Below, one piece after another: positions 19,493-36,537 of a stretch of DNA of 64,000 nt. Location of the stretch: sequence record PV611058.1. One strand, 5' to 3'. A program made the position numbers and the translations under genes. Numbering within the stretch: the first letter of the stretch is position 1; every line of letters starts with the position of its first letter. Under the pieces are notes generated by a model. It made no database searches. It saw only the letters and a list, made by a program, of their open reading frames with translations, and was not told where the DNA came from.

Positions 19493-19631
19493 CTTGTTCC
19501 TGATACTGTGTACCCAAATACATCAGTACTTTTAATTCTTTGAATTCAGTACTATATGAGTCGGTTTGCATCATTTTAGAAGAATATATATTGAATAGTT
19601 TAGCAATATCATCTTGGTCTATTATTTTCAT
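19440..19631 (-). CDS. GTNYQE-family small protein
   Basis: motif YLGTQYQEQ. Confidence 0.75.
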   Translation of the reverse strand: MKIIDQDDIAKLFNIYSSKMMQTDSYSTEFKELKVLMYLGTQYQEQVVKEYIDSLQKDIRYVQ

Positions 19632-21535: not shown

Positions 21536-21975
21536 CGTTTGCCCTTATATGCTTCACGTACATATTCATAATCCAAATAAAATCTTGTACTATCAATACT
21601 TTTAAAGTACCACATAATAACTAAAGTATCTAGTACTTCATCATCATACAAAGTACTATTCTGAAAGTAATACTCTTCACTATCCCACGGACCTTTCAGT
21701 ACTTCAAAGTTCAATTTTAAAGGTCTGCTGCGATTATAAAAACGGATTTCACCACCATAAGCATAACTGATAAATTCTGCATCTGGATTGTATTGTGAAA
21801 AATCTGCGGGACTTTTGGAATTCAGCCCAAGAATAACTGTAGTTGTGGTAAAATCACTATCCTTGTAGTAGTTACCATTCTCGGCTTTGTATACTTCTTC
21901 GAACTTCCCAGCCTTGATATCTTCAATATATACCTGTAGTTCTTTTGCTTTATCCAGAGCACTTTGTAATGACAT
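21532..21975 (-). CDS. FQ-motif family hypothetical protein
   Basis: motif GPWDSEEYYFQNSTLYD. Confidence 0.8.
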   Translation of the reverse strand: MSLQSALDKAKELQVYIEDIKAGKFEEVYKAENGNYYKDSDFTTTTVILGLNSKSPADFSQYNPDAEFISYAYGGEIRFYNRSRPLKLNFEVLKGPWDSEEYYFQNSTLYDDEVLDTLVIMWYFKSIDSTRFYLDYEYVREAYKGKR

Positions 21976-22441
21976 TATCTTCCCCTACAGTATTCTCTAC
22001 GTATTCATAATCGAAATAGAAACTATCAGAACCAATACTTTTAAAGTACCACATAATTACAATAACATCTAATTCTTCTTCATTGTACACAGTACTGTTC
22101 TGGAAGTAATATTCTTCACTATCCCACGGACCTTCCAGTACTGAATACGGAATGATTGTGTCATAATCATCGTAATCAGGACTGTAAATTATAATATCTT
22201 CATCTCTACAATAACTAATGTACTGATTGTACATATGATATTCACAGTCATCAGTATCACCCGTATCAGTGTGTAGTACTAACGTTTCTGCACATATCTC
22301 TGACTCATCATAATCGTCGCGGTCTTTTACAAAAAATTCAGTATCAGATGTTTTATACACACCAGGCACTGAACCTTCTTGTACCATAATCATGTACTCA
22401 TGAATCTTCTTTGCTTCTTTCAATGCACTTTCTAATGACAT
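21950..22441 (-). CDS. FQ-motif family hypothetical protein
   Basis: motif GPWDSEEYYFQNSTVYN. Confidence 0.8.
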   Translation of the reverse strand: MSLESALKEAKKIHEYMIMVQEGSVPGVYKTSDTEFFVKDRDDYDESEICAETLVLHTDTGDTDDCEYHMYNQYISYCRDEDIIIYSPDYDDYDTIIPYSVLEGPWDSEEYYFQNSTVYNEEELDVIVIMWYFKSIGSDSFYFDYEYVENTVGEDNVITKCSG

Positions 22442-22443
22442 TA

Positions 22444-22884
22444 CTAATCCCCTGTACTTAAATATTCACATGCTCCCCAGTCAAGGAAGAAGGGTTCAAA
22501 ATTCAATTCCTTAAAGTACCACAAAACAACCAAGGAATCAAGCATTTCTTGGTTAAAAATAAGACTCTGTTGGAAGTAATACTCTTCAGTACCCCACGGC
22601 CCATCAAGTACCCCGAAGTCAACAGGTGTATTTGATGTGTCAAAAGTAATCTTAGTACCTGGAATATATACAAAGAAACTAGTATATTGACTACATGAAG
22701 AGTACTGTATAGTATTGTCTTTATCATGGCCCATAAGTAAAATATCATCAGAGTATGTCTTTATACCTGATAGATAATACTCATTACCAAATGCACTTAC
22801 TTTATCACCATAGAAACCACTTTTTATGTTATCGTGGAAGTGATGTATTTTGTGTGCCAGTTTAAGTGCACTTGCTAAACTCAT
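22444..22884 (-). CDS. FQ-motif family hypothetical protein
   Basis: motif GPWGTEEYYFQQSLIFN. Confidence 0.8.
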   Translation of the reverse strand: MSLASALKLAHKIHHFHDNIKSGFYGDKVSAFGNEYYLSGIKTYSDDILLMGHDKDNTIQYSSCSQYTSFFVYIPGTKITFDTSNTPVDFGVLDGPWGTEEYYFQQSLIFNQEMLDSLVVLWYFKELNFEPFFLDWGACEYLSTGD

Positions 22885-23351
22885 ATATCCTCTTTAATAA
22901 CTCGTAGTAGATCCAAGTCCAGATAGAAGCTAGGACAATCGGTATTATTAAAGTACCACAGAATGACAAGCTTGTCAAGCACATATTCCTCGTAGATAGT
23001 ATTCTGCTGGAAGTAGAACTCTTCACTTCCCCAGTCATTATCCAGTACTGAATATGGAAGATGTTTCTCTGCTGCACCAGTTATAATGTCAGTATATTGT
23101 ATTAAAATATCAGCATCACGACAGAAGTACATGTAATTATCTTCCAGATTAACATCACACCCAGTGAGTGTTGTTTCAGAAGAATCTAAGTTTTCTTCGT
23201 ACATGTGAATGTACTCACTACTGTCATCGTATATCATTCGACAATAAGCTTTACCTTCCTTGAATAGATACCCATTGAGTCGATTGAGTACTATTTCCTT
23301 TTTACATAAATCAATTAACTTAGCAATTTCTAATGCTCTTGCAAAACTCAT
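22881..23351 (-). CDS. FQ-motif family hypothetical protein
   Basis: motif NDWGSEEFYFQQNTIYE. Confidence 0.8.
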   Translation of the reverse strand: MSFARALEIAKLIDLCKKEIVLNRLNGYLFKEGKAYCRMIYDDSSEYIHMYEENLDSSETTLTGCDVNLEDNYMYFCRDADILIQYTDIITGAAEKHLPYSVLDNDWGSEEFYFQQNTIYEEYVLDKLVILWYFNNTDCPSFYLDLDLLRVIKEDI

Positions 23352-23352
23352 A

Positions 23353-23538
23353 TCAACTCCTGTGTTGTGTCTTGATATAATCTCGGTAAACCATGTGAAT
23401 ATTAGCTATATACAATTCACTAATATCATATGTACCGAAGTACATGTCATTCCTAATGCTGTTGTTATGTCTAATATCAATTACGAATCGTCGAAGTATT
23501 GTATTCATGAATGATTCCATTTGTTCTTTTTTATTCAT
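23353..23538 (-). CDS. small hypothetical protein
   Basis: 61 aa ORF abutting both neighbours; YFGT may be a degenerate GTNYQE motif. Confidence 0.6.
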   Translation of the reverse strand: MNKKEQMESFMNTILRRFVIDIRHNNSIRNDMYFGTYDISELYIANIHMVYRDYIKTQHRS

Positions 23539-23951
23539 AGCTTAAAACGATACCTATCTTTGGAATCAGTCTCTATACAGATTCTTCTATATTCTTTCAT
23601 CTTCTGTTGGAGTTCAATAACTTCCTCTAGTGTACACAAGTACTTCTTGTCAAATATTAATGACTCTTGAAATATTTCAGCCTCACCCTGTACAGTTGTA
23701 TAGTCTTTCATATTTTCTACAACTGTTCCTTTGGCCTGATAATCAATGAAGCTAAAGTAAGAACCATTAAATTTAATGTACTGATCCATTTTGTGTTCAT
23801 AATCACCTTTGTTAAGATTGCAATACACTTCCAGTGAAGTACTAATCTTAGGTATAAACATAGAAAAATCATATTCCATATTACTCACCTGTATTGAAAT
23901 AATAATTACTTGTTGTTGGTGTAGATGTATCAAAGGTGTTTTCTTTAACAT
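23535..23951 (-). CDS. FQ-motif family hypothetical protein
   Basis: CNLNKGD plus EAEIFQESLIFDKKY; start probably 23879 (MEYDF). Confidence 0.75.
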   Translation of the reverse strand: MLKKTPLIHLHQQQVIIISIQVSNMEYDFSMFIPKISTSLEVYCNLNKGDYEHKMDQYIKFNGSYFSFIDYQAKGTVVENMKDYTTVQGEAEIFQESLIFDKKYLCTLEEVIELQQKMKEYRRICIETDSKDRYRFKL

Positions 23952-24246
23952 ATCTCTTCATTTCATTTTGTATAAAAATCATATCTTCTATTGTACATGA
24001 GTACTTATTCTTGTCAAACACCAAAGAAGCTTGAAATAGTTCAACATCATCCAGTACTGTATAATCTGTAATACTTTCAGAGTTATAGTCGAAGTCATCA
24101 TGCAATACATCAATGAAATTAAAACACAAATCCGAGTACTGAATATATAAACTCAACTCATGTTCCGAATCACCCTTGACAAGATTACAGCACAAATCCC
24201 ACCCCGTTCTGGACTTACAAACGTACATTGAATAATCATATGTCAT
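23881..24246 (-). CDS. FQ-motif family hypothetical protein
   Basis: CNLVKGD plus DVELFQASLVFD. Confidence 0.8.
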   Translation of the reverse strand: MTYDYSMYVCKSRTGWDLCCNLVKGDSEHELSLYIQYSDLCFNFIDVLHDDFDYNSESITDYTVLDDVELFQASLVFDKNKYSCTIEDMIFIQNEMKRYVKENTFDTSTPTTSNYYFNTGE

Positions 24247-24602
24247 TCTGGTATTCCTATATTGAATTTGTATTCTTGATTAATACTGACATTGCCTTTA
24301 TTCAAAGAGTCATACTCTTTCATTTCATTTTGTATTGCAATAACTTCTTCAAATGTACACAAGTACTTCTTATCAAATACTAATGACTCCTGAAATAGTT
24401 CAGCGGCATCCATTACTGTATAATCCGGCATATCCTGATGTGGATACTGTAATGAATTGTAATCAATGAATGTAAATTTACCCTGAGTGAAATGAATATA
24501 CTCATTTGCACTGTGCATCAAATCACCTTTGTTTAAATTACAAAAGTACTGATAACTGTGCTTGAAAGTATGTACTGATATTAAAAAATCAAATTCCATC
24601 AC
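24243..24602 (-). CDS. FQ-motif family hypothetical protein
   Basis: CNLNKGD plus AAELFQESLVFDKKY. Confidence 0.8.
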   Translation of the reverse strand: MMEFDFLISVHTFKHSYQYFCNLNKGDLMHSANEYIHFTQGKFTFIDYNSLQYPHQDMPDYTVMDAAELFQESLVFDKKYLCTFEEVIAIQNEMKEYDSLNKGNVSINQEYKFNIGIPE

Positions 24603-25024
24603 TCTTCTCCTAGATTAAAAAATTTCCAGAAATCAACTTCACCAGTACTGCACCAGATATCTATACATTCCTTGTGAATACATTTAATTCTATGCTGGAT
24701 TTCAACCATCTCTTCTAATGTACAGATGTACTTCTTATCAAATACTAATGCCTCCTGAAACAGTGCAGCATCATCAAGTACTGTATAGTCCTGCATCTCG
24801 ATAGATATCCCATGAAACCCAGTACTAAAATCCATCAAATAAAAGTCAGCATTCCAGTACTTTAAAATCTTGTCCCTGGCGTAGTTTAAATCACCCTTGT
24901 ATAAGTTACAATGCGTAACTAACTCACCAGTGTACATGAATGTCCTTGCACAAAATTCATTATATTTTATTTGCATCTTCATTTCAATCGTAATCTCTAC
25001 TATAATTAATAAGGTAAACGCCAA
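24599..25024 (-). CDS. FQ-motif family hypothetical protein
   Basis: CNLYKGD plus DAALFQEALVFDKKY; 5' end near assembly gap is uncertain. Confidence 0.7.
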   Translation of the reverse strand: MAFTLLIIVEITIEMKMQIKYNEFCARTFMYTGELVTHCNLYKGDLNYARDKILKYWNADFYLMDFSTGFHGISIEMQDYTVLDDAALFQEALVFDKKYICTLEEMVEIQHRIKCIHKECIDIWCSTGEVDFWKFFNLGEE

Positions 25025-25073
25025 TATAAGGAGAACGTTTGCGGCGGGGTATTTTTTGTTTCAGGAAACATGA

Positions 25074-25150
25074 NNNNNNNNNNNNNNNNNNNNNNNNNNN
25101 NNNNNNNNNNNNNNNNNNNNNNNNNNNNNNNNNNNNNNNNNNNNNNNNNN
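25074..25150. other. assembly gap (N run) with atypical flanks
   Basis: 77 N; flanks (gcggcgggg, caggaaaca, C9 run) are unlike the rest and look like low-quality read ends. Confidence 0.95.
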
Positions 25151-25186
25151 ACCCCCCCCCCAGCGGCCTGTAAAAATGAAACGTCT

Positions 25187-25411
25187 CTATTTATTCAGCC
25201 TAGAAAGCTTGATTTCTTCAATCCTTTTCATCGCACAAAGCCTTCGACTCGTCTTCTCGTATATATTCAATACTCGTTGTACTGCATTATCTGCATCATC
25301 TGCAACTGCAATCTGAACCAAATATGTATCCTTCAAAATCGAATCCATCATGTATTCAAAACCTTTCACACTAAAGCAATATACCACTTCCGGCTCTTCA
25401 AACGTAATCAT
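25187..25411 (-). CDS. small hypothetical protein
   Basis: 74 aa ORF; 3' end adjacent to gap. Confidence 0.55.
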   Translation of the reverse strand: MITFEEPEVVYCFSVKGFEYMMDSILKDTYLVQIAVADDADNAVQRVLNIYEKTSRRLCAMKRIEEIKLSRLNK

Positions 25412-25601
25412 AATTCCAATCCCCTATCCCATCTAACCTTCTAAGATATCTTGCGTAAATTATTTCGAAATATCTGTGCAACGAAATTACGGATTGCTCA
25501 TAATCATCATTCCTGTACATTGTGCATGTAAGAAAATCATTTAAACCGTAATCTAAACTGCACTTGAACTTCTCCTTTGCAACATCTCTAAAATTATCCA
25601 T
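25398..25601 (-). CDS. small hypothetical protein
   Basis: 67 aa ORF with GAGGA RBS. Confidence 0.6.
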   Translation of the reverse strand: MDNFRDVAKEKFKCSLDYGLNDFLTCTMYRNDDYEQSVISLHRYFEIIYARYLRRLDGIGDWNYDYV

Positions 25602-25764
25602 AATATGTCCTCTGCACAGCGTAGGTGTACTGTGAACTCAGCACCGTTAATAGGTAATCTATGTTGTAAGCACGATTTCCTCGTTGACTAGCATGACTAG
25701 AATAAAGAATATTATCCACATATGTATCGAACTGTTCTTCAAATAACTCTTTCATCAGCACCCT

Positions 25765-26391
25765 TTAGCACCCTTTAACAACTTTTGAAATGTAATCTTC
25801 TAATGCACCAATGTTCTTTGTATTCGTTCGAACTAAAAGATAACTTAAATTCTCGAACTCCTGAACATAATGCTTAACAGCGTACATGCATCGTAATTCA
25901 AAATCTGTATGAACCGTTTTGTACTGAAATAACATCTCTTCTGAAGCATCTAAAAGCTCTGTAGCTTGTTCTGTACTGAACTTAAAGGGATTCTGTACTC
26001 CTGAACTAAAACACTTTTGTTCGTTCGTCTGGACACCCTGTGATAGATATAATCCTGTGCTACCATCTTGTGTTGATATCGAATTGAAACCATTACTTGC
26101 AACCATTAAATCTGAACTCAATACAAATAATAATTTATCTTCCTTATGAATTAATAAATCTGACTTCAGGGATTTTATTCCTGTACTGGTTATATCACCT
26201 ATACTAAGATTGTCACTGAACTTCTCAGCGTTGTTCGCAATGCTCTGGACAAGATTTTTTAATCTCTTAATGGCACTTCTGTCTTTTTCTAATGTATCTA
26301 ATAAACTCATTGAACTCATTGTACTTTCCTTACATATTTGTACCGAACAAAACGGAACTTTGAATGCCATTAATCGACACTTCATGTACAT
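25765..26391 (-). CDS. FQ-motif family hypothetical protein
   Basis: motif SEEMLFQYKTVH; start probably near 26319. Confidence 0.7.
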   Translation of the reverse strand: MYMKCRLMAFKVPFCSVQICKESTMSSMSLLDTLEKDRSAIKRLKNLVQSIANNAEKFSDNLSIGDITSTGIKSLKSDLLIHKEDKLLFVLSSDLMVASNGFNSISTQDGSTGLYLSQGVQTNEQKCFSSGVQNPFKFSTEQATELLDASEEMLFQYKTVHTDFELRCMYAVKHYVQEFENLSYLLVRTNTKNIGALEDYISKVVKGC

Positions 26392-26674
26392 ATATATTTT
26401 GTCTGAATACCTGAAGCAATTGAACTAAACTCTGTTGCATAATAATATGCATCGCTAAATTATCAAAGGCCGTTTCGTGTTGGAATCGTGCAGCTTCATC
26501 TTCTATGAAATTCGGAACTTGGACTGGATTCTCAAAATTTGTCCTTGTACTGAACTGTACATCATTGTCCTGTACCTTAATACCATATGAATTATCATTG
26601 TTATCAACTACATCAAATTCAATTAAACTACCATCTTTACTGACGTTTACTATATAAACTGAAAATCTACTCAT
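26330..26674 (-). CDS. FQ-motif family hypothetical protein
   Basis: motif EAARFQHETAFD. Confidence 0.7.
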   Translation of the reverse strand: MSRFSVYIVNVSKDGSLIEFDVVDNNDNSYGIKVQDNDVQFSTRTNFENPVQVPNFIEDEAARFQHETAFDNLAMHIIMQQSLVQLLQVFRQNIYVHEVSINGIQSSVLFGTNM

Positions 26675-27309
26675 AATCCTATTTCCTTTAAATCTTCCAA
26701 AAATGTTTCATAATCACTTAAGGAAAAAAAGATATCCGTATCGATGTTCGCATCTAATACATTATACAAATTCTGCATCTGTAACACATCAGGAGCATCA
26801 ATCAATGATTGCTGAAAATAGGCAGCTTCATCTTCTAAAATATCCCTGAATGATCTCTCTCGTACTCTGTGGTGTACTGAATTGAATATTGTTTTCTCAT
26901 CCTTAAGCATTGGTAGGTATCGAATGTACATGTGTTCTCTTAGATCAGGACTGATGGAACCCCTGAACTGTAACACGTATTCGAAGCACATAGCAACATC
27001 CTGAAGGTAATTGGCACTGTAATTATTGCTGTAAACAATCTTATGACTTCTGAACTCATCATCATTTCTGAACCAATTGTCACCTACTCTGGTGTACTTA
27101 TGACTAAGCAATCCACCCTCTAACGCTTTGATGATCTTCAAAATGTTGTGTGCAAATGCATATGATGTATTGTACTTGGCCTGATACATGTGTGCCTCAA
27201 CCTTATCTTGTGTTAAAATATTCACTGAAATGATTATAACACAAAAGCACCACGATGTTAAGCACTCTGTTGTCAAAATCATCTTGTGATGTAGGATGCA
27301 AGGACGCAT
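26671..27309 (-). CDS. FQ-motif family hypothetical protein
   Basis: motif EAAYFQQSLID; start probably 27189 (MYQAK, GAGG RBS). Confidence 0.7.
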   Translation of the reverse strand: MRPCILHHKMILTTECLTSWCFCVIIISVNILTQDKVEAHMYQAKYNTSYAFAHNILKIIKALEGGLLSHKYTRVGDNWFRNDDEFRSHKIVYSNNYSANYLQDVAMCFEYVLQFRGSISPDLREHMYIRYLPMLKDEKTIFNSVHHRVRERSFRDILEDEAAYFQQSLIDAPDVLQMQNLYNVLDANIDTDIFFSLSDYETFLEDLKEIGL

Positions 27310-27397
27310 TGATGTTAAAATTCACTATATCATTGTGGAATTGGTATGTGAACAAATCAAACTTCGTATGCCTTTGTTTGATATCATAGGCGGTCAT
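27203..27397 (-). CDS. small hypothetical protein
   Basis: 64 aa ORF between array members. Confidence 0.55.
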   Translation of the reverse strand: MTAYDIKQRHTKFDLFTYQFHNDIVNFNINASLHPTSQDDFDNRVLNIVVLLCYNHFSEYFNTR

Positions 27398-27398
27398 A

Positions 27399-28007
27399 TT
27401 ATATATTCAACCCTTTAACAATGGAAATAAATTCTTTGTAAACATTTTCAGGTAAAGCTCTACTACCATAAAGAACACTAAATTCAGGTAACATATCCGA
27501 AATCTCTTTCGCTAAATTTATTTCATCCCTGAACATTTGCACAGGCATGATATCCTGTACCAATGATAACTGAAAGAAAAATGATTCAATATCTTCATGA
27601 ACCTCTGAATTTAAATAAATCTCTTCTGGAAACTGGGCTGTACTGTAATAATAAAATACATCAATTCTTTTTTCATTATTTTGTACAAGAGGTAAATTTC
27701 TTTCGTCTCTCTTATTAATATTTGTTTTCCATGACTCAATGTTATTCGGAACCCAAAACTCATAAGGTGTCTTCTCTCCTGAAATATTATCCAGCTTCAA
27801 TCCATAATATTCACTTTCGCCGTACTTTTGCTTCAAAACAATACCTGTACTACTGATGTTTACAATGTACGTATCAACAATCCCTTCTGTGGTAAAAGGA
27901 ATATTTAACTCTGAACCTTCAGGGTACTTAGCATTGAATGAATCTAATGCTTTACTTAGCACTGGGATTGCACTTGTACTGTACTTCATTAATTGATCTA
28001 TGTTCAT
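27399..28007 (-). CDS. FQ-motif family hypothetical protein
   Basis: motif IESFFFQLSLVQD. Confidence 0.75.
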   Translation of the reverse strand: MNIDQLMKYSTSAIPVLSKALDSFNAKYPEGSELNIPFTTEGIVDTYIVNISSTGIVLKQKYGESEYYGLKLDNISGEKTPYEFWVPNNIESWKTNINKRDERNLPLVQNNEKRIDVFYYYSTAQFPEEIYLNSEVHEDIESFFFQLSLVQDIMPVQMFRDEINLAKEISDMLPEFSVLYGSRALPENVYKEFISIVKGLNI

Positions 28008-28579
28008 TTTAATTCCCCTGTAATCACTGCATTTACTGCACTTGATGCAAATAAACTGATATTTGAACGATACATATCGTACACTGTACTTTCTTTCTTG
28101 TGCACAATGAAATCATAAAGATCGACGAATGCAGGAATAATAATCTTGAATGATTTATTTGGGTACGTCCCAAAATCAACTGTACTCAATTTTGCAACGA
28201 GCATAACAACAAAGATTTCTTCTGGACTATGCAATGTACTGTACTGAAAATATTCCTCAGCACTCATGGCACTTATTGCATTTATATCTTGTGTTTGTAA
28301 TGTAATATTAAGATATTCAAAAATAGAATAAAACTCTGATTTTGTTTGTATTTTGTATTTGTCAATTGGGGTATCTCTCATGAACCATAAACGATCTTGT
28401 CCATAAAAAGGAATGATTGAATTTGGGGAAGCCAGAAATACTTCTTCTCTATCAATATCCTTTAACTCAATTTGCATACCGGATGAATTGGCAATAATTA
28501 ATTCATGAAAAATATAATGAACCTTGTGTACCATCTCTTGTACTGAATTGAAATCATCTGGTATTTTAAAATTTTCCAT
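28004..28579 (-). CDS. FQ-motif family hypothetical protein
   Basis: motif AEEYFQYSTLH; AGGAG RBS. Confidence 0.8.
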   Translation of the reverse strand: MENFKIPDDFNSVQEMVHKVHYIFHELIIANSSGMQIELKDIDREEVFLASPNSIIPFYGQDRLWFMRDTPIDKYKIQTKSEFYSIFEYLNITLQTQDINAISAMSAEEYFQYSTLHSPEEIFVVMLVAKLSTVDFGTYPNKSFKIIIPAFVDLYDFIVHKKESTVYDMYRSNISLFASSAVNAVITGELK

Positions 28580-28653
28580 AGGTATCTCCTTAAAAAATGA
28601 TTACACATTGTACCATGCATTTGTACTTGTGTCAAACAAAAAAAGCCCATATC

Positions 28654-29151
28654 TTACGATACAGGCATGTTTATTTGAATTTCATTGTACAAATCATCAA
28701 TATATAGACATGAAAACGATAAACTTTCTTTAACTATATTGTTGTGATAAAGCATTTTAAATGCAATATAGAAAAATAAATCAATATCATCATGTACTAA
28801 ATTCTGCTGGAACCACCACTCTTCTGTTAAATCTTGTGCATTAAAATCATCAGGAACTACAATTGACGACATATCAGCATCTTCTTTGTACTCAAACCAC
28901 ATGTCGTCATTTGGATAACGTTCATGCTTCTCTGGGTAACAATTGCTGGGATTAAATGCTAAAATATAAAATGCCGTCGCAGAATGTTCTTTATTATAAA
29001 ATGAATTATTCCACACCTGATACCTTTCACCAACATCAAACTCTTTTGATACTGATGTTATTGCACATAATGTACGATATATTGTTTCTATTTTGTGAAC
29101 AAATTTAAAGGCTGCATCTAAACTGAACTCTAAATCAGACATGCGGTGCAT
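28654..29151 (-). CDS. FQ-motif family hypothetical protein
   Basis: motif TEEWWFQQNLVHD. Confidence 0.75.
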   Translation of the reverse strand: MHRMSDLEFSLDAAFKFVHKIETIYRTLCAITSVSKEFDVGERYQVWNNSFYNKEHSATAFYILAFNPSNCYPEKHERYPNDDMWFEYKEDADMSSIVVPDDFNAQDLTEEWWFQQNLVHDDIDLFFYIAFKMLYHNNIVKESLSFSCLYIDDLYNEIQINMPVS

Positions 29152-29471
29152 AAAATTACCTCAACTAAAATAAGAACGGTATTGAATTCGATGCAACCTT
29201 TGATACCTTGATTGTACATGTACTTTGCTACTACATATTTCTGTACTAAATTATAATTATTAAATTCCTCAAAATTGTAATTTAGAATGAAATTTGTACT
29301 CAAAAATAACTTATGCATCTCTAATGCACTCTGATAATATTTGTACAACTCACTGATATCAATACTTTGTAAATCACTTTGTTCATATGTATGATAAGGA
29401 ATGGCGTCAATTTCAATATTATTAAACCATTCTCTTAACTTCTTAATATCAAATGTATTATTCAGCTTCAT
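29130..29471 (-). CDS. hypothetical protein
   Basis: 113 aa ORF in the array; no clear motif. Confidence 0.6.
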   Translation of the reverse strand: MKLNNTFDIKKLREWFNNIEIDAIPYHTYEQSDLQSIDISELYKYYQSALEMHKLFLSTNFILNYNFEEFNNYNLVQKYVVAKYMYNQGIKGCIEFNTVLILVEVILCTACLI

Positions 29472-30051
29472 AACTCAATACCTCCATTAAGCACTCATAA
29501 ACACCATCAATCGCATAAGCACAAAAATTGAAATTAATTTTGTGATTCTTGTGTAATGGACTATTGTGTACTGTACTCATTATGACATTATAAAACAACA
29601 AACGCACTGGTACAAGCATTGAACCTTGGAAAAATTCTTCCTCTGATTTATATGTATTGTACTCTATTGCTTTGTTCGTTTCTGTATCATATGTTACCAT
29701 TACTAATGGGGAATTTTTATTATACCATGCGTATTCTAAATCATTCTTTCCAATAACAGCACCTGGGGCGAAATCCAAAAGACCAATAACACTACGGGAA
29801 TTTGGGGTATCAGGTGTATTGAATCGTTTATCAAAATGACTCGTGCACGCAATATGTGAATTATAATCAGATGGTTTAAACCCCATGAATGCGTTAATGA
29901 TTCTTGTATATGGTTTTTTATTATGTGCTGCTTTCTGTGCATTATATAAGGCTGCAACAATACAAGCTAACTTTTGTCCCATAAGGATTGCATTAGCGTA
30001 GGTGTACTGAATTTCATTGTACTCATTGCTTTCATTGTACTTCGAGATCAT
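29458..30051 (-). CDS. FQ-motif family hypothetical protein
   Basis: motif SEEEFFQGSMLV. Confidence 0.75.
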   Translation of the reverse strand: MISKYNESNEYNEIQYTYANAILMGQKLACIVAALYNAQKAAHNKKPYTRIINAFMGFKPSDYNSHIACTSHFDKRFNTPDTPNSRSVIGLLDFAPGAVIGKNDLEYAWYNKNSPLVMVTYDTETNKAIEYNTYKSEEEFFQGSMLVPVRLLFYNVIMSTVHNSPLHKNHKINFNFCAYAIDGVYECLMEVLSYEAE

Positions 30052-30373
30052 GGAACAGCCTCACTTTACCTAACTTGTCATTGGATATTAATTCGTTAAC
30101 AGCTTTCTGTATATTCCTTAATAATAGCACATCAAATCCTTTTGTGTCAAGCACACATTGCATTTGGAAGAATTCTTCTTCTGATAATGTATTAAAATCC
30201 ACAAAATTGTCTAATATTACGTCATTATCCAAATGTGCCATGTGCCATGTATTTCTTTCGGAGCGTTTAATAAAATTCCATCCATCTGGATAATCGGGTT
30301 CTAATTCTACATATATCCCCGATACTGTATAAAGCATTTTATATATCATAACTATTGTACTCATTGCTTTCAC
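30032..30373 (-). CDS. FQ-motif family hypothetical protein
   Basis: motif DFNTLSEEEFFQMQCVLD. Confidence 0.8.
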   Translation of the reverse strand: MKAMSTIVMIYKMLYTVSGIYVELEPDYPDGWNFIKRSERNTWHMAHLDNDVILDNFVDFNTLSEEEFFQMQCVLDTKGFDVLLLRNIQKAVNELISNDKLGKVRLFHDLEVQ

Positions 30374-30681
30374 TGTACGTCGATGTCATAATACGCTCCT
30401 ACCTCATAATCTTTCTTGCTTTGGAATTCATTAACGACTTTCTGTATATTTCTTAATGTTACCATGTCATGTCCGTACATGTCAACCACCAATTGCATTT
30501 GGAAAAATTCTTCTTCAGATAATGTATTAAAATCTATAAAATAATCCGTAACAACATGTTCGTCTAAATTTGCCATGTACCATTGATTGGTATCGACCTC
30601 TTTAACCAAATTCCATGCATCTGAATCGGATTCTAATTCTACATATATTAATGTTAATGTATAAAGAATTTTATACTTCAT
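30370..30681 (-). CDS. FQ-motif family hypothetical protein
   Basis: motif DFNTLSEEEFFQMQLVVD; close paralogue of previous. Confidence 0.8.
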   Translation of the reverse strand: MKYKILYTLTLIYVELESDSDAWNLVKEVDTNQWYMANLDEHVVTDYFIDFNTLSEEEFFQMQLVVDMYGHDMVTLRNIQKVVNEFQSKKDYEVGAYYDIDVQ

Positions 30682-31177
30682 AACTATATCCTTGCATTAA
30701 TAAATCATAAACGTTTGAAAGGTGCGGAATTTTGATATAAAATTTAAAACCCTTAATTAAAGGATTCGCGTACAATGAACTGAATAACTTTAGATAATGT
30801 ATTTGACGAGGACTGTATAATAACGATTTCTGAAATAATTCAGCACTACAATCTGAACTAATATCAATTAAATCAATTCGTGCTTCTACTTCATCATCTT
30901 GTTTCAAAACATAAAAGAAATAATCGTTTGTGTTGACCCACAAATACCCTTCACTATTTTCGTATATAACAGGAGATGCTTGTTCTGGATTGCCTTGGGC
31001 AAATGCTGCAAAACAAACTTTTGCATTACTTTCATCTTTAAACATAAACGATAATTTATCATATCTATCTTCTATGCGTAAATCACCTATAAAAATGTAC
31101 TTATGCATAGAATGATTATTCTTGAGCATAAGCATTACTGTACTAATCTTGTGTGCTAATAATTCTATCTCATTCAT
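30671..31177 (-). CDS. FQ-motif family hypothetical protein
   Basis: motif SAELFQKSLLYS; ends LLMQGYSYEV. Confidence 0.8.
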   Translation of the reverse strand: MNEIELLAHKISTVMLMLKNNHSMHKYIFIGDLRIEDRYDKLSFMFKDESNAKVCFAAFAQGNPEQASPVIYENSEGYLWVNTNDYFFYVLKQDDEVEARIDLIDISSDCSAELFQKSLLYSPRQIHYLKLFSSLYANPLIKGFKFYIKIPHLSNVYDLLMQGYSYEV

Positions 31178-31253
31178 ATATTATTACCTATTGATGGATA
31201 CATCGTCATTGTCTTCTAATTCAACATAAATCATATCTTTTGTATAAAGCATT

Positions 31254-31814
31254 TTATACTTCATAACTATATCCTTGCATTAAAAGATCATAAGCAATAT
31301 CAACTAATTCTAAACGAATGAAAAATTTTAAATTATCTTTCAATGGATTCAAATGCATTGTACTAAACAACATAAGATACTTCATTTGATTTGTATTGTA
31401 TATTAGGGATGTCTGAAATACTTCTGCTTCATTGTAAGGATCAATGAATTTTATACCTTCTTCACTATAATCCGTTTTGGAATTCTGATATATAAAATAA
31501 TCATCACCATAATTGTACCACAAATAACCTTCAAAACTGGAATCAAATTCTGAATTTTCATTTCGCATTAAAGGTGATACTGAAATTGGATTTGAACCAA
31601 CTGTTGCACAAACCTCAATGAAAGCATCTTCATTTCCCTTAACTTCTTCTTTGATTTTATCATTGTACTGTCCTGCAAAACCAGCTTTTACTTCCAAATA
31701 TAAACTACTCCCAACTTTATTAATTCTTAAAAGGGAACTCTGTACTGTATTCGCATTGTTCAGCACTAACGATATTGTGCAAATCTTATGTACCAATAAC
31801 TCAATATCATTCAT
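31254..31814 (-). CDS. FQ-motif family hypothetical protein
   Basis: motif EAEVFQTSLIYN; ends LLMQGYSYEV like previous. Confidence 0.8.
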   Translation of the reverse strand: MNDIELLVHKICTISLVLNNANTVQSSLLRINKVGSSLYLEVKAGFAGQYNDKIKEEVKGNEDAFIEVCATVGSNPISVSPLMRNENSEFDSSFEGYLWYNYGDDYFIYQNSKTDYSEEGIKFIDPYNEAEVFQTSLIYNTNQMKYLMLFSTMHLNPLKDNLKFFIRLELVDIAYDLLMQGYSYEV

Positions 31815-31825
31815 ATTGGTATTCC

Positions 31826-32008
31826 TTAATTTGGTGGATTTGGATGTAATAACTGATCTATATAATTTAAATGTTCTATTGTAACTAATGAAAGATAATA
31901 ATTGTAATTATCTATACCACCCTTTAAATGTATATTGTAATACATCTTGATACTTACTAATAAAGAATCATTTAAATCATTTATTGCTTTTGTATTAACG
32001 GTTTTCAT
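31826..32008 (-). CDS. small hypothetical protein
   Basis: 60 aa ORF, stop/start overlap. Confidence 0.55.
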   Translation of the reverse strand: MKTVNTKAINDLNDSLLVSIKMYYNIHLKGGIDNYNYYLSLVTIEHLNYIDQLLHPNPPN

Positions 32009-32205
32009 TAATGTTCTTCTCTTAAAAAACGCTTAATGGCACAATCTAAATAAAAATCATAATACATCATATCTCTATTCTTAACCCATACACAATAATC
32101 TGCATTAATATTTCTTAATAATATATTCATATTATAATCTTCACACCCTAATCGTGCCATTTGATAGGATACTCCGTTCCATTTATTGTATAAGATATAA
32201 TCCAT
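32008..32205 (-). CDS. small hypothetical protein
   Basis: 65 aa ORF. Confidence 0.55.
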   Translation of the reverse strand: MDYILYNKWNGVSYQMARLGCEDYNMNILLRNINADYCVWVKNRDMMYYDFYLDCAIKRFLREEH

Positions 32206-32558
32206 CCGTAATGAATAGGATGATTTTTGTCTGAAACAGGAATAAAATATAAAGATGTACTGGGGTTATAACTGAATAAATCGTTGTTACCAATTGTAAA
32301 ATGTGATAACTCAATCTTCCTTGTACCTGTACTTGGACGAAGAACATTCTTAACACCGAAGACTGTACCTTGATATTTCTCGGAAAATTCAAACAATGCA
32401 TCTGCAATTAAATCACGAAACTCCGCATGTATGGTTTCAAAAAAATCTATATTACACGATGTTTTAATATCCTTGAACTCCTTATATAAAGAGCTTCTTG
32501 TATTCAAAAGAAATATTACTTTTTTAAGATCCTGAACTATTTCTGGATTCATATTCAT
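32148..32558 (-). CDS. hypothetical protein
   Basis: 136 aa ORF. Confidence 0.65.
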   Translation of the reverse strand: MNMNPEIVQDLKKVIFLLNTRSSLYKEFKDIKTSCNIDFFETIHAEFRDLIADALFEFSEKYQGTVFGVKNVLRPSTGTRKIELSHFTIGNNDLFSYNPSTSLYFIPVSDKNHPIHYGWIISYTINGTEYPIKWHD

Positions 32559-32775
32559 TTATCTCATTCTGTAACTTAAGCATCAAAATTTGCATATTAA
32601 TTTTTTGTACAAGATGATTGAGAAATTTCTGTACTGTATCTTCTTGTTCTTTTGTACCAAGATAAAATAACATATTAAATTCAGATAATCTCAGAGCGAA
32701 ATCTTCCTCTCCACCTTGTAAACAAAAATCCCTGTACTTTGATGCATACAAATAACGGTTTATTTTTTTGTACAT
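32524..32775 (-). CDS. GTNYQE-family small protein
   Basis: motif YLGTKEQED; AGGAG RBS. Confidence 0.75.
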   Translation of the reverse strand: MYKKINRYLYASKYRDFCLQGGEEDFALRLSEFNMLFYLGTKEQEDTVQKFLNHLVQKINMQILMLKLQNEINEYESRNSSGS

Positions 32776-32803
32776 TTATATTGCATCTCCTTTAGGTATA
32801 TTC

Positions 32804-33115
32804 TTATATGTCAATTTCAATGATCCTCCCTGACATACCTTGTATTAGCTTATCATACATATCGAGCATCACTTTTTGTATATTAATTAATACTGGCATC
32901 GTGCAAATATCAATGTCGTATATTAAGCTGTACTGGAATAATTCCTCTTCCTGCATGTGTACTAAATTAGGTAAAAGATAATTGTCTGCCTCTTCATCCT
33001 GGTACTTGAAATGCATAACACCATCCTTTTTGTACAAAAGAATGTCAATATCACCTAACTCTTCTGCATAACCAAAAATACATATACTCGATGTTTTTGC
33101 TATATTAAATTTCAT
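32804..33115 (-). CDS. FQ-motif family hypothetical protein
   Basis: motif QEEELFQYSLIYD. Confidence 0.8.
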   Translation of the reverse strand: MKFNIAKTSSICIFGYAEELGDIDILLYKKDGVMHFKYQDEEADNYLLPNLVHMQEEELFQYSLIYDIDICTMPVLINIQKVMLDMYDKLIQGMSGRIIEIDI

Positions 33116-33124
33116 ATTCTTCTC

Positions 33125-33475
33125 TTATATGTAGAATTCACATACGCGTTGAACAAAATTCTTTGGAAGATGACAATGTGCAATCATCTGCTTTTGTACT
33201 TCCTTCATGTCTTCGAATGTAAATCCTAAAGAATCATCATGTACTAACAAGTACTGAAACTCTTCTTCTTCAGAGATAGAACATAAATTCGGTACTGAAA
33301 TTGTTTTTGCTTTTCTTGCACCCAATTTCCAATGAAAAGAATTATTGCATTTTCTGTACTCAAATATCTTCAACCCAGAACCTGTATTAAAATCAGCTAC
33401 TACAATGTAACATGAATTCTTACGTACAATACAATTGAACTTACGCATTATCTCCACCTCTCTCCGTCTGTACAA
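33125..33475 (-). CDS. FQ-motif family hypothetical protein
   Basis: motif SEEEEFQYLLVHD. Confidence 0.75.
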   Translation of the reverse strand: MYRRREVEIMRKFNCIVRKNSCYIVVADFNTGSGLKIFEYRKCNNSFHWKLGARKAKTISVPNLCSISEEEEFQYLLVHDDSLGFTFEDMKEVQKQMIAHCHLPKNFVQRVCEFYI

Positions 33476-33693
33476 GAGTACTGGTACGTTGTCGTTAGGG
33501 TAGGGACCATGTTTGTAATGGGCATATTATTAACAATAACGGTAACAGGCATAAGAATCGTCTCTACTCTACTCTGTCCTGTCCTTGTACAATTCATCTT
33601 CTGCATTTCATCTGAATCCATGAAATACAATACAAATGGTGCAATCCCAAGAACAATACACAAGACGATAAGGAAATTTAAAAAATTTAACAT
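33448..33693 (-). CDS. putative membrane-anchored small protein
   Basis: hydrophobic N-terminal FLIVLCIVLGIAPFVLYF; Cys pair in soluble part. Confidence 0.65.
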   Translation of the reverse strand: MLNFLNFLIVLCIVLGIAPFVLYFMDSDEMQKMNCTRTGQSRVETILMPVTVIVNNMPITNMVPTLTTTYQYSCTDGERWR

Positions 33694-33722
33694 AATTTTT
33701 ACCCCATGATTAACGTACAGGT

Positions 33723-33751
33723 ACTATATCAGTAATGAAAAGTACTGTCAA
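33723..33751 (-). promoter_or_regulatory. sigma70-type promoter with AGTACT overlapping -35
   Basis: TTGACA-GTACT...-N17-TGA-TATAGT. Confidence 0.65.
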
Positions 33752-33752
33752 G

Positions 33753-34127
33753 CTAGTATTGCACTGTTCTAATGAAAGTACCTTTACTCATGGATTTAAG
33801 CTTATGAACCTCTTCCTGTATACCCTTGATTAACCCTAAAGGTATAGGTAAATCATGTACTAAGCTGTACTGAAAGTATTCTTCTTCAGATAAAGTACTA
33901 ACATCTGGAATGCCAATTTTAGTTAGATAATCTTGATGTGTTGACCAATAAATTATATCTTCAGTACTATTGTACTCCCCATATACTGAACAATATTGAT
34001 GAATATCTTTCCTGTACCCTTGAGCAATAAAGAACTTATCTACTGCATTACCAGCATTAATAGAATTCACTTCGATTGTCACAGTACTTGAGCTTGTTTT
34101 TCCTTTACTATGCATATTAATCCCCAA
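33753..34127 (-). CDS. FQ-motif family hypothetical protein
   Basis: motif SEEEYFQYSLVHD. Confidence 0.75.
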   Translation of the reverse strand: MGINMHSKGKTSSSTVTIEVNSINAGNAVDKFFIAQGYRKDIHQYCSVYGEYNSTEDIIYWSTHQDYLTKIGIPDVSTLSEEEYFQYSLVHDLPIPLGLIKGIQEEVHKLKSMSKGTFIRTVQY

Positions 34128-34303
34128 ATTAGATATCGAACACTATCAGCTTGATAGTTAGTTCCTACTGTGTGTTTTAATATTAACTCATCTTTCAGTA
34201 CTGAACATTCTGCATTAGATATAGGAAGAGAATTAATTCTTTGAATTTCTGGTCGCAAAATACCGCGAAGCTTGCGGTAATCTTCGTATGATAATATTTT
34301 CAT
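34079..34303 (-). CDS. GTNYQE-family small protein
   Basis: motif TVGTNYQAD. Confidence 0.75.
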   Translation of the reverse strand: MKILSYEDYRKLRGILRPEIQRINSLPISNAECSVLKDELILKHTVGTNYQADSVRYLIWGLICIVKEKQAQVL

Positions 34304-34306
34304 TGT

Positions 34307-34648
34307 TCAGTACTCAACGATGTGTTCTTCATAACCATTAAACTCCGGTTTAGTTTCTTTCATTAGGACTACCATTTTATGTACTAATGGCATAGGAAAT
34401 TCTAAATCCCATACTAATGATTCTTGAAAGTATTCTTCTTCAGATAAAGTACTTAAATCTTTAATATCAACGTGCTTGTATATTTTCTTTTCGTAATTAA
34501 GAAATGATATATATAAATCATTAACATAAGAATCATAAGTAATTGTGAATGGCTTACCCTTGTAGTCCATTACATCTTTACATAGACTGCATTTGATATA
34601 TGTATGTTCTTCTGAACTGTATACATTGAGTTGTATATTAGTTTTCAT
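34307..34648 (-). CDS. FQ-motif family hypothetical protein
   Basis: motif LSTLSEEEYFQESLVWDLEFP. Confidence 0.8.
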   Translation of the reverse strand: MKTNIQLNVYSSEEHTYIKCSLCKDVMDYKGKPFTITYDSYVNDLYISFLNYEKKIYKHVDIKDLSTLSEEEYFQESLVWDLEFPMPLVHKMVVLMKETKPEFNGYEEHIVEY

Positions 34649-34662
34649 AGTTACCTTATATA

Positions 34663-35001
34663 TTAATACTCAACGATGTGTTCTTCATAACCATTAAACT
34701 CCGGTTTAGTTTCTTTCATTAGTACTATCATCTTATGTACTAATGGCATAGGAAACTCCAAATCCCATACTAATGATTCTTGAAAGTATTCCTCTTCAGA
34801 TAAAGTACTTAAATCTTCAATGTCAATGTGTTCGTATATGTTATATTTGTAATCAGCAAAAGATATATAAAAACCTCTTGTATTATCATAAGTAAGTGCA
34901 AATGGCTTACCTTTGTAGTCCATTACAGAGTTACATGTATGGCATTTGATGTATGTACTTGCAAATGATTTATATACCTTGAGTTTTATATTAGTTTTCA
35001 T
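34663..35001 (-). CDS. FQ-motif family hypothetical protein (recent duplicate of previous)
   Basis: C-terminal 40+ aa nearly identical to 34307..34648. Confidence 0.8.
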   Translation of the reverse strand: MKTNIKLKVYKSFASTYIKCHTCNSVMDYKGKPFALTYDNTRGFYISFADYKYNIYEHIDIEDLSTLSEEEYFQESLVWDLEFPMPLVHKMIVLMKETKPEFNGYEEHIVEY

Positions 35002-35275
35002 ATTTCTCTTTATTAGCTTGTTTAGATTGTGTGGTTTTATAGTGAATGAAATCTATTAATGTAATCAAGTACAACGTCAAATAGTACTCTTGTTGATCTG
35101 TACCTAATGATACAAAGAACTTGTGCTCATAGATTAAAACCTGTTTCTCTTCAAATGGACATTTAATCCTCTGTATAGGCTTAAGTAAATGATAGTACTT
35201 ATTAAATCTATGATACATTTCTAGTTCTGTCAGTACTTTCATATTAAACACGTACTCCATTAGCAGTAGCATCAC
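34991..35275 (-). CDS. GTNYQE-family small protein
   Basis: SLGTDQQEY; start probably 35242. Confidence 0.75.
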   Translation of the reverse strand: MMLLLMEYVFNMKVLTELEMYHRFNKYYHLLKPIQRIKCPFEEKQVLIYEHKFFVSLGTDQQEYYLTLYLITLIDFIHYKTTQSKQANKEKYEN

Positions 35276-35465
35276 GTAAAGCTAACAAATACTTCTGTAC
35301 TGCTTGCTCTTGATGATCTGTACCTAAAAGTATATACATCCATAATTCACTGTAATGTACATCTTGTGTATAAGGGTTGTTGTAACTTTTTGATAATATA
35401 GCATCAAATTCAGATGCATGAACCCTTGCGAACTTAAGCATATCTTGTTGTGTTATGATTCTCAT
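35244..35465 (-). CDS. GTNYQE-family small protein
   Basis: LLGTDHQEQ. Confidence 0.8.
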   Translation of the reverse strand: MRIITQQDMLKFARVHASEFDAILSKSYNNPYTQDVHYSELWMYILLGTDHQEQAVQKYLLALRDATANGVRV

Positions 35466-35677
35466 ATCTTTTCCTGTACTATCTGTATAAGAATACCTAT
35501 GTGTGAATTAACAGTTCTCTCTTGATGCTGTGTTCCTAAGAGTGTCAGTACTATCATATCTGAACGCAAAAGATTTTTCTGAAGTTCACTTATATCAGTT
35601 CTTGAATCAAGTGCCATATATTTGTGATTATTCTTCCTGAATAGTGCCAAGTACTCTTGATTTGATATTTCCTTCAT
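35462..35677 (-). CDS. GTNYQE-family small protein
   Basis: LLGTQHQER. Confidence 0.8.
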   Translation of the reverse strand: MKEISNQEYLALFRKNNHKYMALDSRTDISELQKNLLRSDMIVLTLLGTQHQERTVNSHIGILIQIVQEKI

Positions 35678-35913
35678 AGTTTATCCCTGATGCCATTTAA
35701 AAGTGCTCTAATATGCTCCTGTACGAATTTGTACTGACTGTCTGTTCCTAGAGTGAGTAGTAATCTTAAATCTGAACTTTTGATATGATATTCTAAATCA
35801 TTATTTGATTCTTGCATCAGTTTCTTAAAGGATGAGAAGTTTGCAGCCATTAGTTCAATGTATTCTGCTGTTCCTAGGGGTTTGTGTATTGGCTGTTTGT
35901 GCTGTCTGTGCAT
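35674..35913 (-). CDS. GTNYQE-family small protein
   Basis: TLGTDSQYK. Confidence 0.8.
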   Translation of the reverse strand: MHRQHKQPIHKPLGTAEYIELMAANFSSFKKLMQESNNDLEYHIKSSDLRLLLTLGTDSQYKFVQEHIRALLNGIRDKL

Positions 35914-36125
35914 TTTAATTTTATTACCCTTTTGAGTGTATTAATGTAATTATACACATTGGCTTCTTGATAGTTTGTTCCTAGAGTAGCTTGAACGTAG
36001 ATTTCATTTAACTTAATAATTTTATCAGTATCTGGAAGTTTTGATGTGTTAATGGCAAATAACTTCGAAAACAGTCCATTTATGATTGTTAGGTATTCTA
36101 CTTCGGTAATGATTCGCATTTGCAT
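35874..36125 (-). CDS. GTNYQE-family small protein
   Basis: TLGTNYQEA. Confidence 0.8.
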   Translation of the reverse strand: MQMRIITEVEYLTIINGLFSKLFAINTSKLPDTDKIIKLNEIYVQATLGTNYQEANVYNYINTLKRVIKLKCTDSTNSQYTNP

Positions 36126-36331
36126 TGGATAAACCTTTTTAGTTCTTTGATGTAATCATTAATATTACATTCTTGATAGTTAGTCCCTAGGGTAGAATTA
36201 ACATAGATTTCACTCATTAGAATATTTTTTTCTTCATCAGGTAAATCTGTGGTCTTTGCTATATACAATTTTAGAATTAAACTACTTAATAGTTCGTGGT
36301 ATTCACTTGGTGAAAGGATTTTCATTTGCAT
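36098..36331 (-). CDS. GTNYQE-family small protein
   Basis: TLGTNYQEC. Confidence 0.8.
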   Translation of the reverse strand: MQMKILSPSEYHELLSSLILKLYIAKTTDLPDEEKNILMSEIYVNSTLGTNYQECNINDYIKELKRFIQCKCESLPK

Positions 36332-36537
36332 GTTCTCAGTACAGATTCTTTAAGTTCATCGATGTAGTCCTCAACGAATTGCTCTTGGAAGTTAGTTCCA
36401 ATATATAAAAGAACTCTTAAATCTGCTCTAAGTAACTCTTTTTCATCATCATCTATATCAGACAATGTTATGTTTAAGAATTTACTTGTATTAAAGATTA
36501 ACAATTCTGTTTGTTCACTGTGGCTTAAAATTTTCAT
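36322..36537 (-). CDS. GTNYQE-family small protein
   Basis: YIGTNFQEQ. Confidence 0.8.
   Translation of the reverse strand: MKILSHSEQTELLIFNTSKFLNITLSDIDDDEKELLRADLRVLLYIGTNFQEQFVEDYIDELKESVLRTCK

Follow-up and report, generated by a model that had tools for sequence, protein, structure and literature searches.

A Strand-Specific Trinucleotide Ban over 8.3 kb of an Asteriusvirus Jumbo Phage and Its Possible Origin in ACU-Free Transcripts

INTRODUCTION

The stretch of DNA analyzed here (the window, 64,000 nucleotides [nt] in length) comprises the last 64 kilobases (kb) of the 384,131-nt record PV611058.1, the genome of Escherichia phage WPEC3, a jumbo phage of the genus Asteriusvirus; window positions 26000–34000 correspond to record positions 346131–354131 at 100% identity. 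Within it lies an exclusion zone of about 20 genes from which a single trinucleotide, ACT, is missing on the coding strand, embedded in a genome that otherwise abounds in the palindrome AGTACT. The nearest relatives of WPEC3 are fEgEco12, vB_Ec-M-J, and CMSTMSU at 97–98% identity, followed by PBECO4, phAPEC6, G17, and 121Q at 83–87%, all of them Asteriusvirus jumbo phages.

Essentially all long open reading frames (ORFs) of the window are located on the minus strand. Read on that strand from 64000 downward, a terminal repeat is followed by a tandem array of small paralogs bearing an LGTNYQE motif (41.5–35.7 kb) and then by a second tandem array, that of the FQ family, inside which the ACT-free block sits. 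The terminal repeat matches the direct terminal repeats of 20,993 bp described for fEgEco12 (PMC13070987). The features that frame the analysis are the following.

24930..33249, minus strand: exclusion zone of about 20 genes plus spacers, without coding-strand ACT (that is, without plus-strand AGT), and with the N gap 25074–25150 inside it
~5400..35300, minus strand: tandem array of FQ paralogs, with an invariant F-Q and the consensus EExYFQxSL (E-E-x-[YF]-F-Q-x-S-L)
41498..64000, minus strand: terminal-repeat copy, 100% identical to record positions 1–22503, with small early genes whose sigma70-like promoters contain AGTACT at set positions

The papers on fEgEco12, Sharanji, and CBB are silent on both AGTACT and the zone, and the zone appears to be undescribed in the literature searched.

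A COMPLETE BAN ON CODING-STRAND ACT

The plus strand of the zone contains no AGT at all over 8321 nt (24930–33249), against about 160–171 expected copies. Outside the zone the trinucleotide occurs at ~20 per kb, and no other stretch of the 384-kb genome goes without AGT for more than 310 nt; among all 3- and 4-mers genome-wide, the AGT gap is the top outlier, with 171 expected copies as compared with 68 for the next unrelated case. The loss is specific to the word and to the strand, since plus-strand AG[ACG] (164 vs. 177 expected) and plus-strand ACT (205 vs. 185 expected) both occur at near their expected numbers. Because all block genes lie on the minus strand, a missing plus-strand AGT amounts to a missing coding-strand ACT in every reading frame and in the spacers as well. 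Accordingly, coding-strand ACT counts by frame are 0/0/0, where the same proteins written in the codon usage of the flank would give 42.7/39.2/33.2, and the 605 nt of noncoding block spacers hold none. As a threonine codon, ACT drops from 41% in the flank to 0% in the block, even away from GTAC, and the amino-acid composition of the block is nearly unchanged relative to its neighbors. No other significantly ACT-poor gene was found in the 384-kb genome. As a footprint of selection, the complete exclusion of one trinucleotide from a single strand for 8.3 kb is very strong.

The initial annotation of this DNA had argued that the target of selection is the nucleic acid rather than the protein, a view which is upheld by the involvement of all three frames, by an amino-acid make-up like that of the neighbors, and by the synonymous choices through which the exclusion is reached. 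It had illustrated the point with two codon strings, TTCCAGTACAGTACTTTG and TTTCAGTACAGTACATTG, both of which are present on the minus strand (at 16668–16685 and 28232–28249, respectively); strictly synonymous swaps at the motif itself are, however, limited to the frame-0 cases. Causes at the level of the tRNA or codon, such as a tRNA-Thr nuclease, were considered and rejected, given that the ban extends out of frame and into spacers and that ACC, which is read by the same tRNA, is still used.

THE AGTACT PALINDROME AND ITS POLAR VARIANT

AGTACT occurs 1156 times in WPEC3, as opposed to ~129 copies expected from base frequencies over 384,131 nt, and 1115, 891, and 1034 times in fEgEco12, PBECO4, and G17, where a reversed control word occurs 135–154 times. 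An excess of 7–9 times chance extends across the RaK2-like clade, for which Klebsiella phage RaK2, Cronobacter phage GAP32, and Pectobacterium phage CBB were compared. The extended palindrome CAGTACTG numbers 266 in WPEC3 (control 4), 247 in RaK2, 130 in GAP32, and 151 in CBB (controls 1–2). In the core genome, AGTACT stands 4- to 5-fold above synonymous-codon shuffles and its one-base variants do not; in the left flank its copies are spread over the frames as 36/24/36; its own flanks are symmetric (C before, G after); and single sites are kept between WPEC3 and PBECO4 at 70%, as against a 46% background. In the terminal repeat, about one third of the copies occupy fixed positions of sigma70-like promoters, overlapping the -35 element or directly preceding the -10 element, in the contexts AGTACTTGC (21 times), AGTACT directly before TAnAAT (16 times), and TTGACAGTACT (6 times). 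Being enriched, frame-independent, conserved by site, and placed at fixed promoter positions, AGTACT behaves, as judged by this distribution, as a signal on double-strand DNA shared by the entire RaK2-like clade, and it would most simply be the site of a dimeric DNA-binding factor. Host sites of the SlmA, LexA, and TrpR type were considered for its reader, and SlmA was set aside because the AGTACT flanks prefer C..G and not G..C. No paper mentioning the palindrome was found in the literature searched.

Against this background, the initial annotation had portrayed the block as a domain in which AGTACT is replaced by its polar variant TGTACT, and its counts are reproduced by exact enumeration. 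The last AGTACT lies at 24856 and the next at 33250, with none in 24862–33249; the approximately 45 plus-strand TGTACT reported for that interval number 46 (among them those at 30003, 30018, and 30036); and plus-strand AGTACA, described as essentially absent, has a count of 0. Plus-strand TGTACA occurs there 12 times. The dense resumption of AGTACT from 33250 onward, with 16 copies to 35655, is likewise correct. The AGTACT-free gap of the block, 8394 nt, is the longest genome-wide, ahead of one of 5979 nt (35651–41628) and one of 2348 nt. Exact as it is, the description proved too narrow, since every plus-strand AGT is missing from 24930–33249 and not AGTACT alone.

25278..33245, plus strand: 46 TGTACT sites by exact count (coding-strand AGTACA), the permitted stand-in for AGTACT
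33250..35655, no strand assigned: "island" with normal motif use, 16 AGTACT
35651..41628, minus strand: second AGTACT-free stretch, ~27 small tandem paralogs of 65–93 amino acids (aa) with the LGTNYQE motif, conserved in relatives

The polarity follows from the ban. AGTACT holds ACT on both strands and is thus forbidden inside the zone, and coding-strand AGTACA, which avoids ACT and keeps five of the six bases, is the nearest allowed form and is used instead. TGTACT occurs 43 times in the block genes, compared to 13.1 ± 2.8 in synonymous shuffles, with its sites distributed over the frames as 16/16/12; the plus-strand first-base replacements of AGTACT are T in 46 cases, C in 2, and G in 2; and the doubly altered TGTACA is not enriched. 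In PBECO4, 62% of the TGTACT sites are kept versus a 41% background, and none corresponds to AGTACT in the relatives. The motif switch is a consequence of the trinucleotide ban, not its cause. It follows that altering one half of the site is compatible with the clade-wide AGTACT signal, a fact that limits the ways in which this signal can be read.

The paralog array of the second AGTACT-free stretch starts exactly where the terminal repeat has its inner edge. This stretch is distinct from the main zone and far weaker in effect. It shows no trinucleotide ban (AGT 140 vs. 114 expected), AGTACT is merely unenriched (0 vs. ~2 expected), and plus-strand AGTACA is raised (9 vs. 2.2 in shuffles, 89% conserved), a polarity opposite to that of the main zone. 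A milder echo of the asymmetry in the FQ array is seen in RaK2, where an AT-rich stretch at 240–290 kb, downstream of an AGTACT-dense region, carries 16–20 coding-strand AGTACA per 10 kb and normal AGTACT.

The strand asymmetry also bears on the explanations first offered for the block, namely, import from a relative that has a different motif allele, or the purging of AGTACT under an AGTACT-cutting restriction enzyme of the ScaI/Eco255I type. Both would account for a missing palindrome alongside an abundant one-base variant. Yet the ban affects every AGT and does so on one strand only, same-strand ACT being normal; the palindrome is always lost at the same end, with plus-strand AGTACN at 0 for every N and NGTACT at 50; and AGTACT is favored, not depleted, in all other parts of the genome. 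A double-strand restriction enzyme cannot yield such an asymmetry, and escape from an AGTACT cutter is therefore unsupported. As for import, a zone of the same polarity is present in all six Asteriusvirus genomes examined (WPEC3, fEgEco12, PBECO4, G17, 121Q, and SD-15_S21), in place of the patchy presence of a mosaic block, and apart from the ACT ban the GC content, third-position composition, and amino-acid use of the block match those of the flanks; identity to PBECO4 is 0.80 in the block and 0.85 in the left flank. We consider import or purge highly unlikely. A further suggestion, that the genome is divided into differently addressed domains, is right only loosely: one special domain does exist, and it is defined by a strand-specific trinucleotide ban.

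CONSERVATION OF THE ZONE IN ASTERIUSVIRUS

AGT-free zones of 8294 nt, 7620 nt, and 8621 nt are found in fEgEco12, PBECO4, and G17, respectively (masks included), and in 121Q and Salmonella phage SD-15_S21 the first 5.7–6.1 kb fetched inside the block are without AGT. In these comparisons, the relatives' stretches homologous to the N gap were masked or left out, and the statements on the ban exclude those bases. Among the three relatives aligned in full, the identity of the block to WPEC3 is ~98% for fEgEco12, 0.80 for PBECO4, and 0.79 for G17, and lineage-specific, unalignable parts of the block are likewise AGT-free. The 1272 substitutions that separate WPEC3 from PBECO4 would have created ~55 new AGT had they been random; one is seen, at the edge. 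In CBB and RaK2, no 3- or 4-mer, AGT and ACT included, has a comparable zone. Taken together, the near-total lack of new AGT and the absence of the zone from CBB and RaK2 indicate, at the level of sequence comparison, that the ban is kept by purifying selection and is specific to Asteriusvirus.

The same comparisons address whether the ban could have arisen as a by-product without selection, either as a founder effect of recent tandem duplication or through strand-specific mutation, for example, deamination of nontemplate cytosine. The location of the zone inside a tandem paralog array and the somewhat raised plus-strand AAT, or coding-strand ATT (379 vs. 316), lend this idea some appeal. Internal duplication is, however, restricted to three segment pairs that are only 70–81% alike, so that the paralogs are old and the zone is not a recent amplification, and neither process would readily explain why essentially none of the ~55 expected AGT has appeared since the split from PBECO4. 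Nor do the replacements fit: ACA and AGTACA are seen in place of the banned word, whereas deamination would give ATT and AGTATT (AGTATT 5 vs. 9.8), and a C-to-T deamination footprint was rejected on these grounds. An unselected origin is very improbable.

Since an assembly gap falls inside the zone and the record is labeled a partial genome, an artefact or chimera at this gap was also weighed.

25074..25150, no strand assigned: assembly gap (N) inside the exclusion zone, with flanks collinear in relatives

A query spanning the flanks (23500–26700) matches as two pieces on the same strand, which together span 3178 nt in both fEgEco12 and CMSTMSU, 3199 nt in WPEC5, and 3201 nt in the window; collinearity of the flanks extends to more than 30 independent records. 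Both sides of the gap hence belong together, and the concern that the left edge might be a misjoin is dispelled. Furthermore, the zone recurs in phages that were sequenced independently of one another and come from Korea, Canada, Germany, Finland, South Africa, and Thailand, and the chance of an artefact is close to nil. The right border of the gap (25151–25165) is a GC-rich run ending in poly-G, and the other side (25040–25073) carries CCCCGCCGC; a hairpin beside the gap probably broke the assembly, and the GC-rich/poly-G run is a plausible reason for its failure.

EDGES OF THE ZONE AND TRANSCRIPTION SIGNALS

Four conserved or recognizable elements at the head and in the interior of the zone, together with the ORFs at its downstream end, bear on how the ban may relate to transcription.

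33723..33751, minus strand: head promoter of the zone, sigma70-like (TTGACA-17-TATAGT, matching the consensus at 11 of 12 positions); AGTACT overlaps the -35 element; 100% conserved in fEgEco12, PBECO4, and G17
33448..33693, minus strand: first ORF of the unit, 81 aa, hydrophobic; its sole coding-strand ACT lies inside AGTACT 33477–33482
33125..33448, minus strand: FQ-family ORF; its sole coding-strand ACT lies in AGTACT 33250–33255 (FQY|L codons), and the total ban starts just downstream
28607..28666, minus strand: terminator-like hairpin (28645–28666) followed by the promoter TTGACA-17-TACAAT, with AGTACA where the repeat-region promoters have AGTACT
25190..25755, minus strand: the zone's downstream end, with three small ORFs (~48, 63, and 71 aa) taken straight from the sequence and, after them, the GC-rich/poly-G run adjoining the N gap

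Coding-strand ACT is normal up to 3 nt before the -10 element of the head promoter and near zero thereafter. In the 470 nt that follow the -10 element there are only two ACT, both inside AGTACT palindromes (33477 and 33250) whose ~250-nt spacing recurs in relatives, and none remains after 33250. In a wastewater metatranscriptome contig of a relative, one of these two retained ACT is also gone, through an A-to-T change at 33477 that turns AGTACT into TGTACT. The drop of ACT at the -10 element of a fully conserved promoter suggests that the start of the zone is aligned with a transcript. The downstream edge lies past the three small ORFs, the GC-rich run, and the gap, and ~50 nt into the next ORF. 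The terminator–promoter pair at ~28.6 kb, in whose promoter spacer AGTACA replaces AGTACT (TTGACAcaAGTACA...TACAAT at 28635–28607), implies that the zone spans more than one transcript. As a scan of 23.5–42.5 kb for promoters and terminators gave overall counts equal to chance, the promoter argument is built on individually conserved sites only.

INTERPRETATION: TRANSCRIPTS POSSIBLY KEPT FREE OF ACU

We favor, with a probability of roughly 0.42, the reading that the transcripts of the zone are kept ACU-free to resist a putative ACU-specific endoribonuclease, a proposal drawn from the pattern of the ban. Immunity to such an enzyme ranks as the most likely explanation, with a nickase or single-stranded DNA (ssDNA) nuclease and a template free of primase sites retained as rivals. 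The ban would act at the level of the transcript, such that RNAs of the zone, lacking ACU, escape cutting by an endoribonuclease that recognizes this triplet. The putative enzyme would be a member of the class that includes MazF (ACA), ChpB (ACD), and MqsR (GCU) and could be either a host toxin triggered by infection or a shut-off enzyme of the phage; in either case, the zone genes would stay expressible while other messages are destroyed. In its fullest form, which we hold tentatively and at a little short of even odds, the zone constitutes a "nuclease-proof" operon set of Asteriusvirus, in which ~20 early genes are written in an ACU-free dialect and provide the only translatable messages during ACU-specific RNA destruction.

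Several observations agree with the avoidance of mRNA-interferase sites. ACT is missing on the sense strand only (coding strand 0; reverse complement at its normal level), its absence is independent of frame and includes the spacers, and its density falls at the -10 element of a conserved promoter, with two ACT left in the 470 nt beyond. Three-base specificity has precedent among the ribosome-independent toxins of E. coli, which recognize ACA, ACD, and GCU (PMC12151602), and MazF-SEA cuts U^ACU and U^ACG (PMC10864209).

Several points weigh against this reading. The specificities given by the literature searched are ACA, ACD, GCU, and UACU/UACG, with none for ACU alone, and we know of no ACU-only enzyme. 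The known E. coli enzymes are unfit because ACA and ACG are not avoided in the zone. More broadly, ChpB (ACD), MazF (ACA), MqsR (GCU), Kid (UUACU), and MazF-SEA (UACU/UACG) were each considered as the agent and rejected, as the zone shows no avoidance of ACA, ACG, or GCT and lacks every NACT; with no known enzyme fitting, the enzyme would have to be new. NCBIfam, PADLOC, and PHROGs gave no nuclease for the zone proteins or for 20 repeat-region ORFs, and a search for RNases among the repeat-region ORFs returned none, only an ORF resembling GNAT acetyltransferases (50335–50691, minus strand). The public RNA runs located consist of assembled Logan contigs, a form that reveals neither transcript ends nor levels of expression. 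ACU is normal in all other phage genes, so that the nuclease would be active only briefly or in some hosts. The boundaries are also imperfect, in that the unit retains two ACU close to its 5' end and the downstream edge falls inside a gene, adjoining the N gap. Finally, a strand-specific process at the DNA level would leave the same sequence footprint.

One such process is a frequent-cutting, strand-specific nickase or an ssDNA nuclease that reads the triplet, in which case the AGT-free template strand (or the ACT-free displaced strand) would stay transcribable while other DNA is nicked. Chlorovirus nickases recognize motifs as short as CCD or RAG, and the footprint, being strand-specific, frame-independent, and inclusive of spacers, is equally compatible with an activity of this kind. 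The phage could moreover protect its remaining genome with an N6-adenine methyltransferase (611–1135) and a C5-cytosine methyltransferase (record 101307–102140). The former, a small protein encoded on the minus strand, scores 91.8 bits against TIGR01712, just below the cut-off; the latter, also on the minus strand, comprises 290 aa. On the other hand, if methylation protects the genome, the zone needs no sequence ban; no such nickase was found; three-base nickases are to our knowledge limited to chloroviruses; and a start at the -10 element of a promoter better fits a definition by transcript. We regard the nickase or ssDNA nuclease as improbable.

A template free of primase sites is the other rival. 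Primases read one-strand trinucleotides (GTT/GCT for T4, GTC for T7, CTG for DnaG), and were ACT the recognition triplet of a phage primase of the T4 gp61 type, rightward forks could not prime on that strand for 8.3 kb. A primase subunit is annotated in fEgEco12, and the GC skew changes at the island beside the zone. The benefit is nevertheless not evident, as a primer beyond the zone would give one long Okazaki fragment; the sites of gp61-type enzymes must have a G at their 5' end; a promoter, and no origin-like feature, marks the start of the zone; and CBB and RaK2 have related replication genes and no such zone. This scenario is decidedly improbable.

Should the favored endoribonuclease reading prove true, the sequence alone would have revealed the specificity of an undiscovered enzyme, and the zone would be the first natural domain-scale recoding for RNase immunity in a DNA virus. 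Nuclease immunity would predict the recognition sequence (ACU, or AGT/ACT on DNA) of an enzyme relevant in E. coli and Salmonella infection, mark ~20 proteins of unknown function as ones which the phage must make under attack, and supply a natural design rule for nuclease-resistant expression cassettes.

OTHER FEATURES OF THE ZONE PROTEINS, THE WINDOW, AND THE GENOME

For the zone proteins, the only PHROGs families matched are of unknown function, credible hits were lacking in NCBIfam and PADLOC, and the ESM Atlas gave no usable matches. An AlphaFold model of the FQ family (predicted local distance difference test score [pLDDT] 86) consists of four strands and two helices and finds no significant PDB match (Foldseek E > 0.3); a likeness to the polo-box domain was dismissed, its VIA-align Z of 5.4 being within noise. 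The FQ-family consensus resembles the TEV/3C protease cleavage site.

The terminal repeat (41498–64000) carries roughly 60 small ORFs (58 in the ORF set used), and its promoters are followed by hairpins of the type GGGGAGA...TCTCCCC in the 5' untranslated region. Chi sequences (GCTGGTGG) in the 22.5-kb repeat (42860–63408) number 10 on the coding strand and 2 on the opposite one, with fewer than one expected, and genome-wide counts are 34 versus 9; their enrichment in the repeat may shield the linear ends from RecBCD. The genome's next strongest k-mer gaps lie outside the window, in two giant tail-fibre-like genes (1639 and 1907 aa; record 225384–236170), which contain a TTTT-free stretch of 5282 nt and a CATA-free stretch of 4722 nt.

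COMPARISON WITH KNOWN SYSTEMS

As an over-represented word, AGTACT has parallels in Chi, KOPS, DNA uptake sequences, and GATC clusters. It exceeds chance 7–9 times, independently of frame, with conserved sites, and in a manner shared across a clade; it differs from those words in being palindromic without orientation bias and in being embedded in early promoters.

The ban itself resembles several forms of nuclease evasion or targeting. Restriction-site avoidance in phages likewise reflects selection on a short DNA word independent of coding, but it concerns sites of 4–8 bp, on both strands and genome-wide, whereas in Asteriusvirus a one-strand 3-mer is avoided in one domain and a related palindrome is favored elsewhere. 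A closer parallel in polarity is phage T7, in which all sites for the Type III enzyme EcoP15I point one way, such that an asymmetric word present in one orientation only disables a nuclease. That bias is genome-wide and involves a 6-mer read on double-strand DNA, in contrast to a 3-mer wholly absent from one strand of a local block. At the RNA level, phage T4 encodes RegB, a sequence-specific RNase (GGAG) that shuts off early mRNAs, mainly by cutting at the GGAG of Shine-Dalgarno sequences, and here too a short word decides between targets and non-targets. We know of no multi-gene GGAG-free domain associated with RegB, and no RegB-like gene was identified in the present analysis.

The most direct comparison is provided by ACA-less mRNAs and by the RNA coliphages, which infect the same host and in which a short word read by a ribosome-independent endoribonuclease is similarly missing from sense RNA in any frame, which confers immunity (PMC12151602). 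The avoidance of ACA by the RNA coliphages is mild, at a relative frequency of ~0.83, and extends over the genome (PMC12151602), whereas the ban in Asteriusvirus is absolute, is confined to one 8.3-kb domain of a DNA phage, and is directed at ACU.

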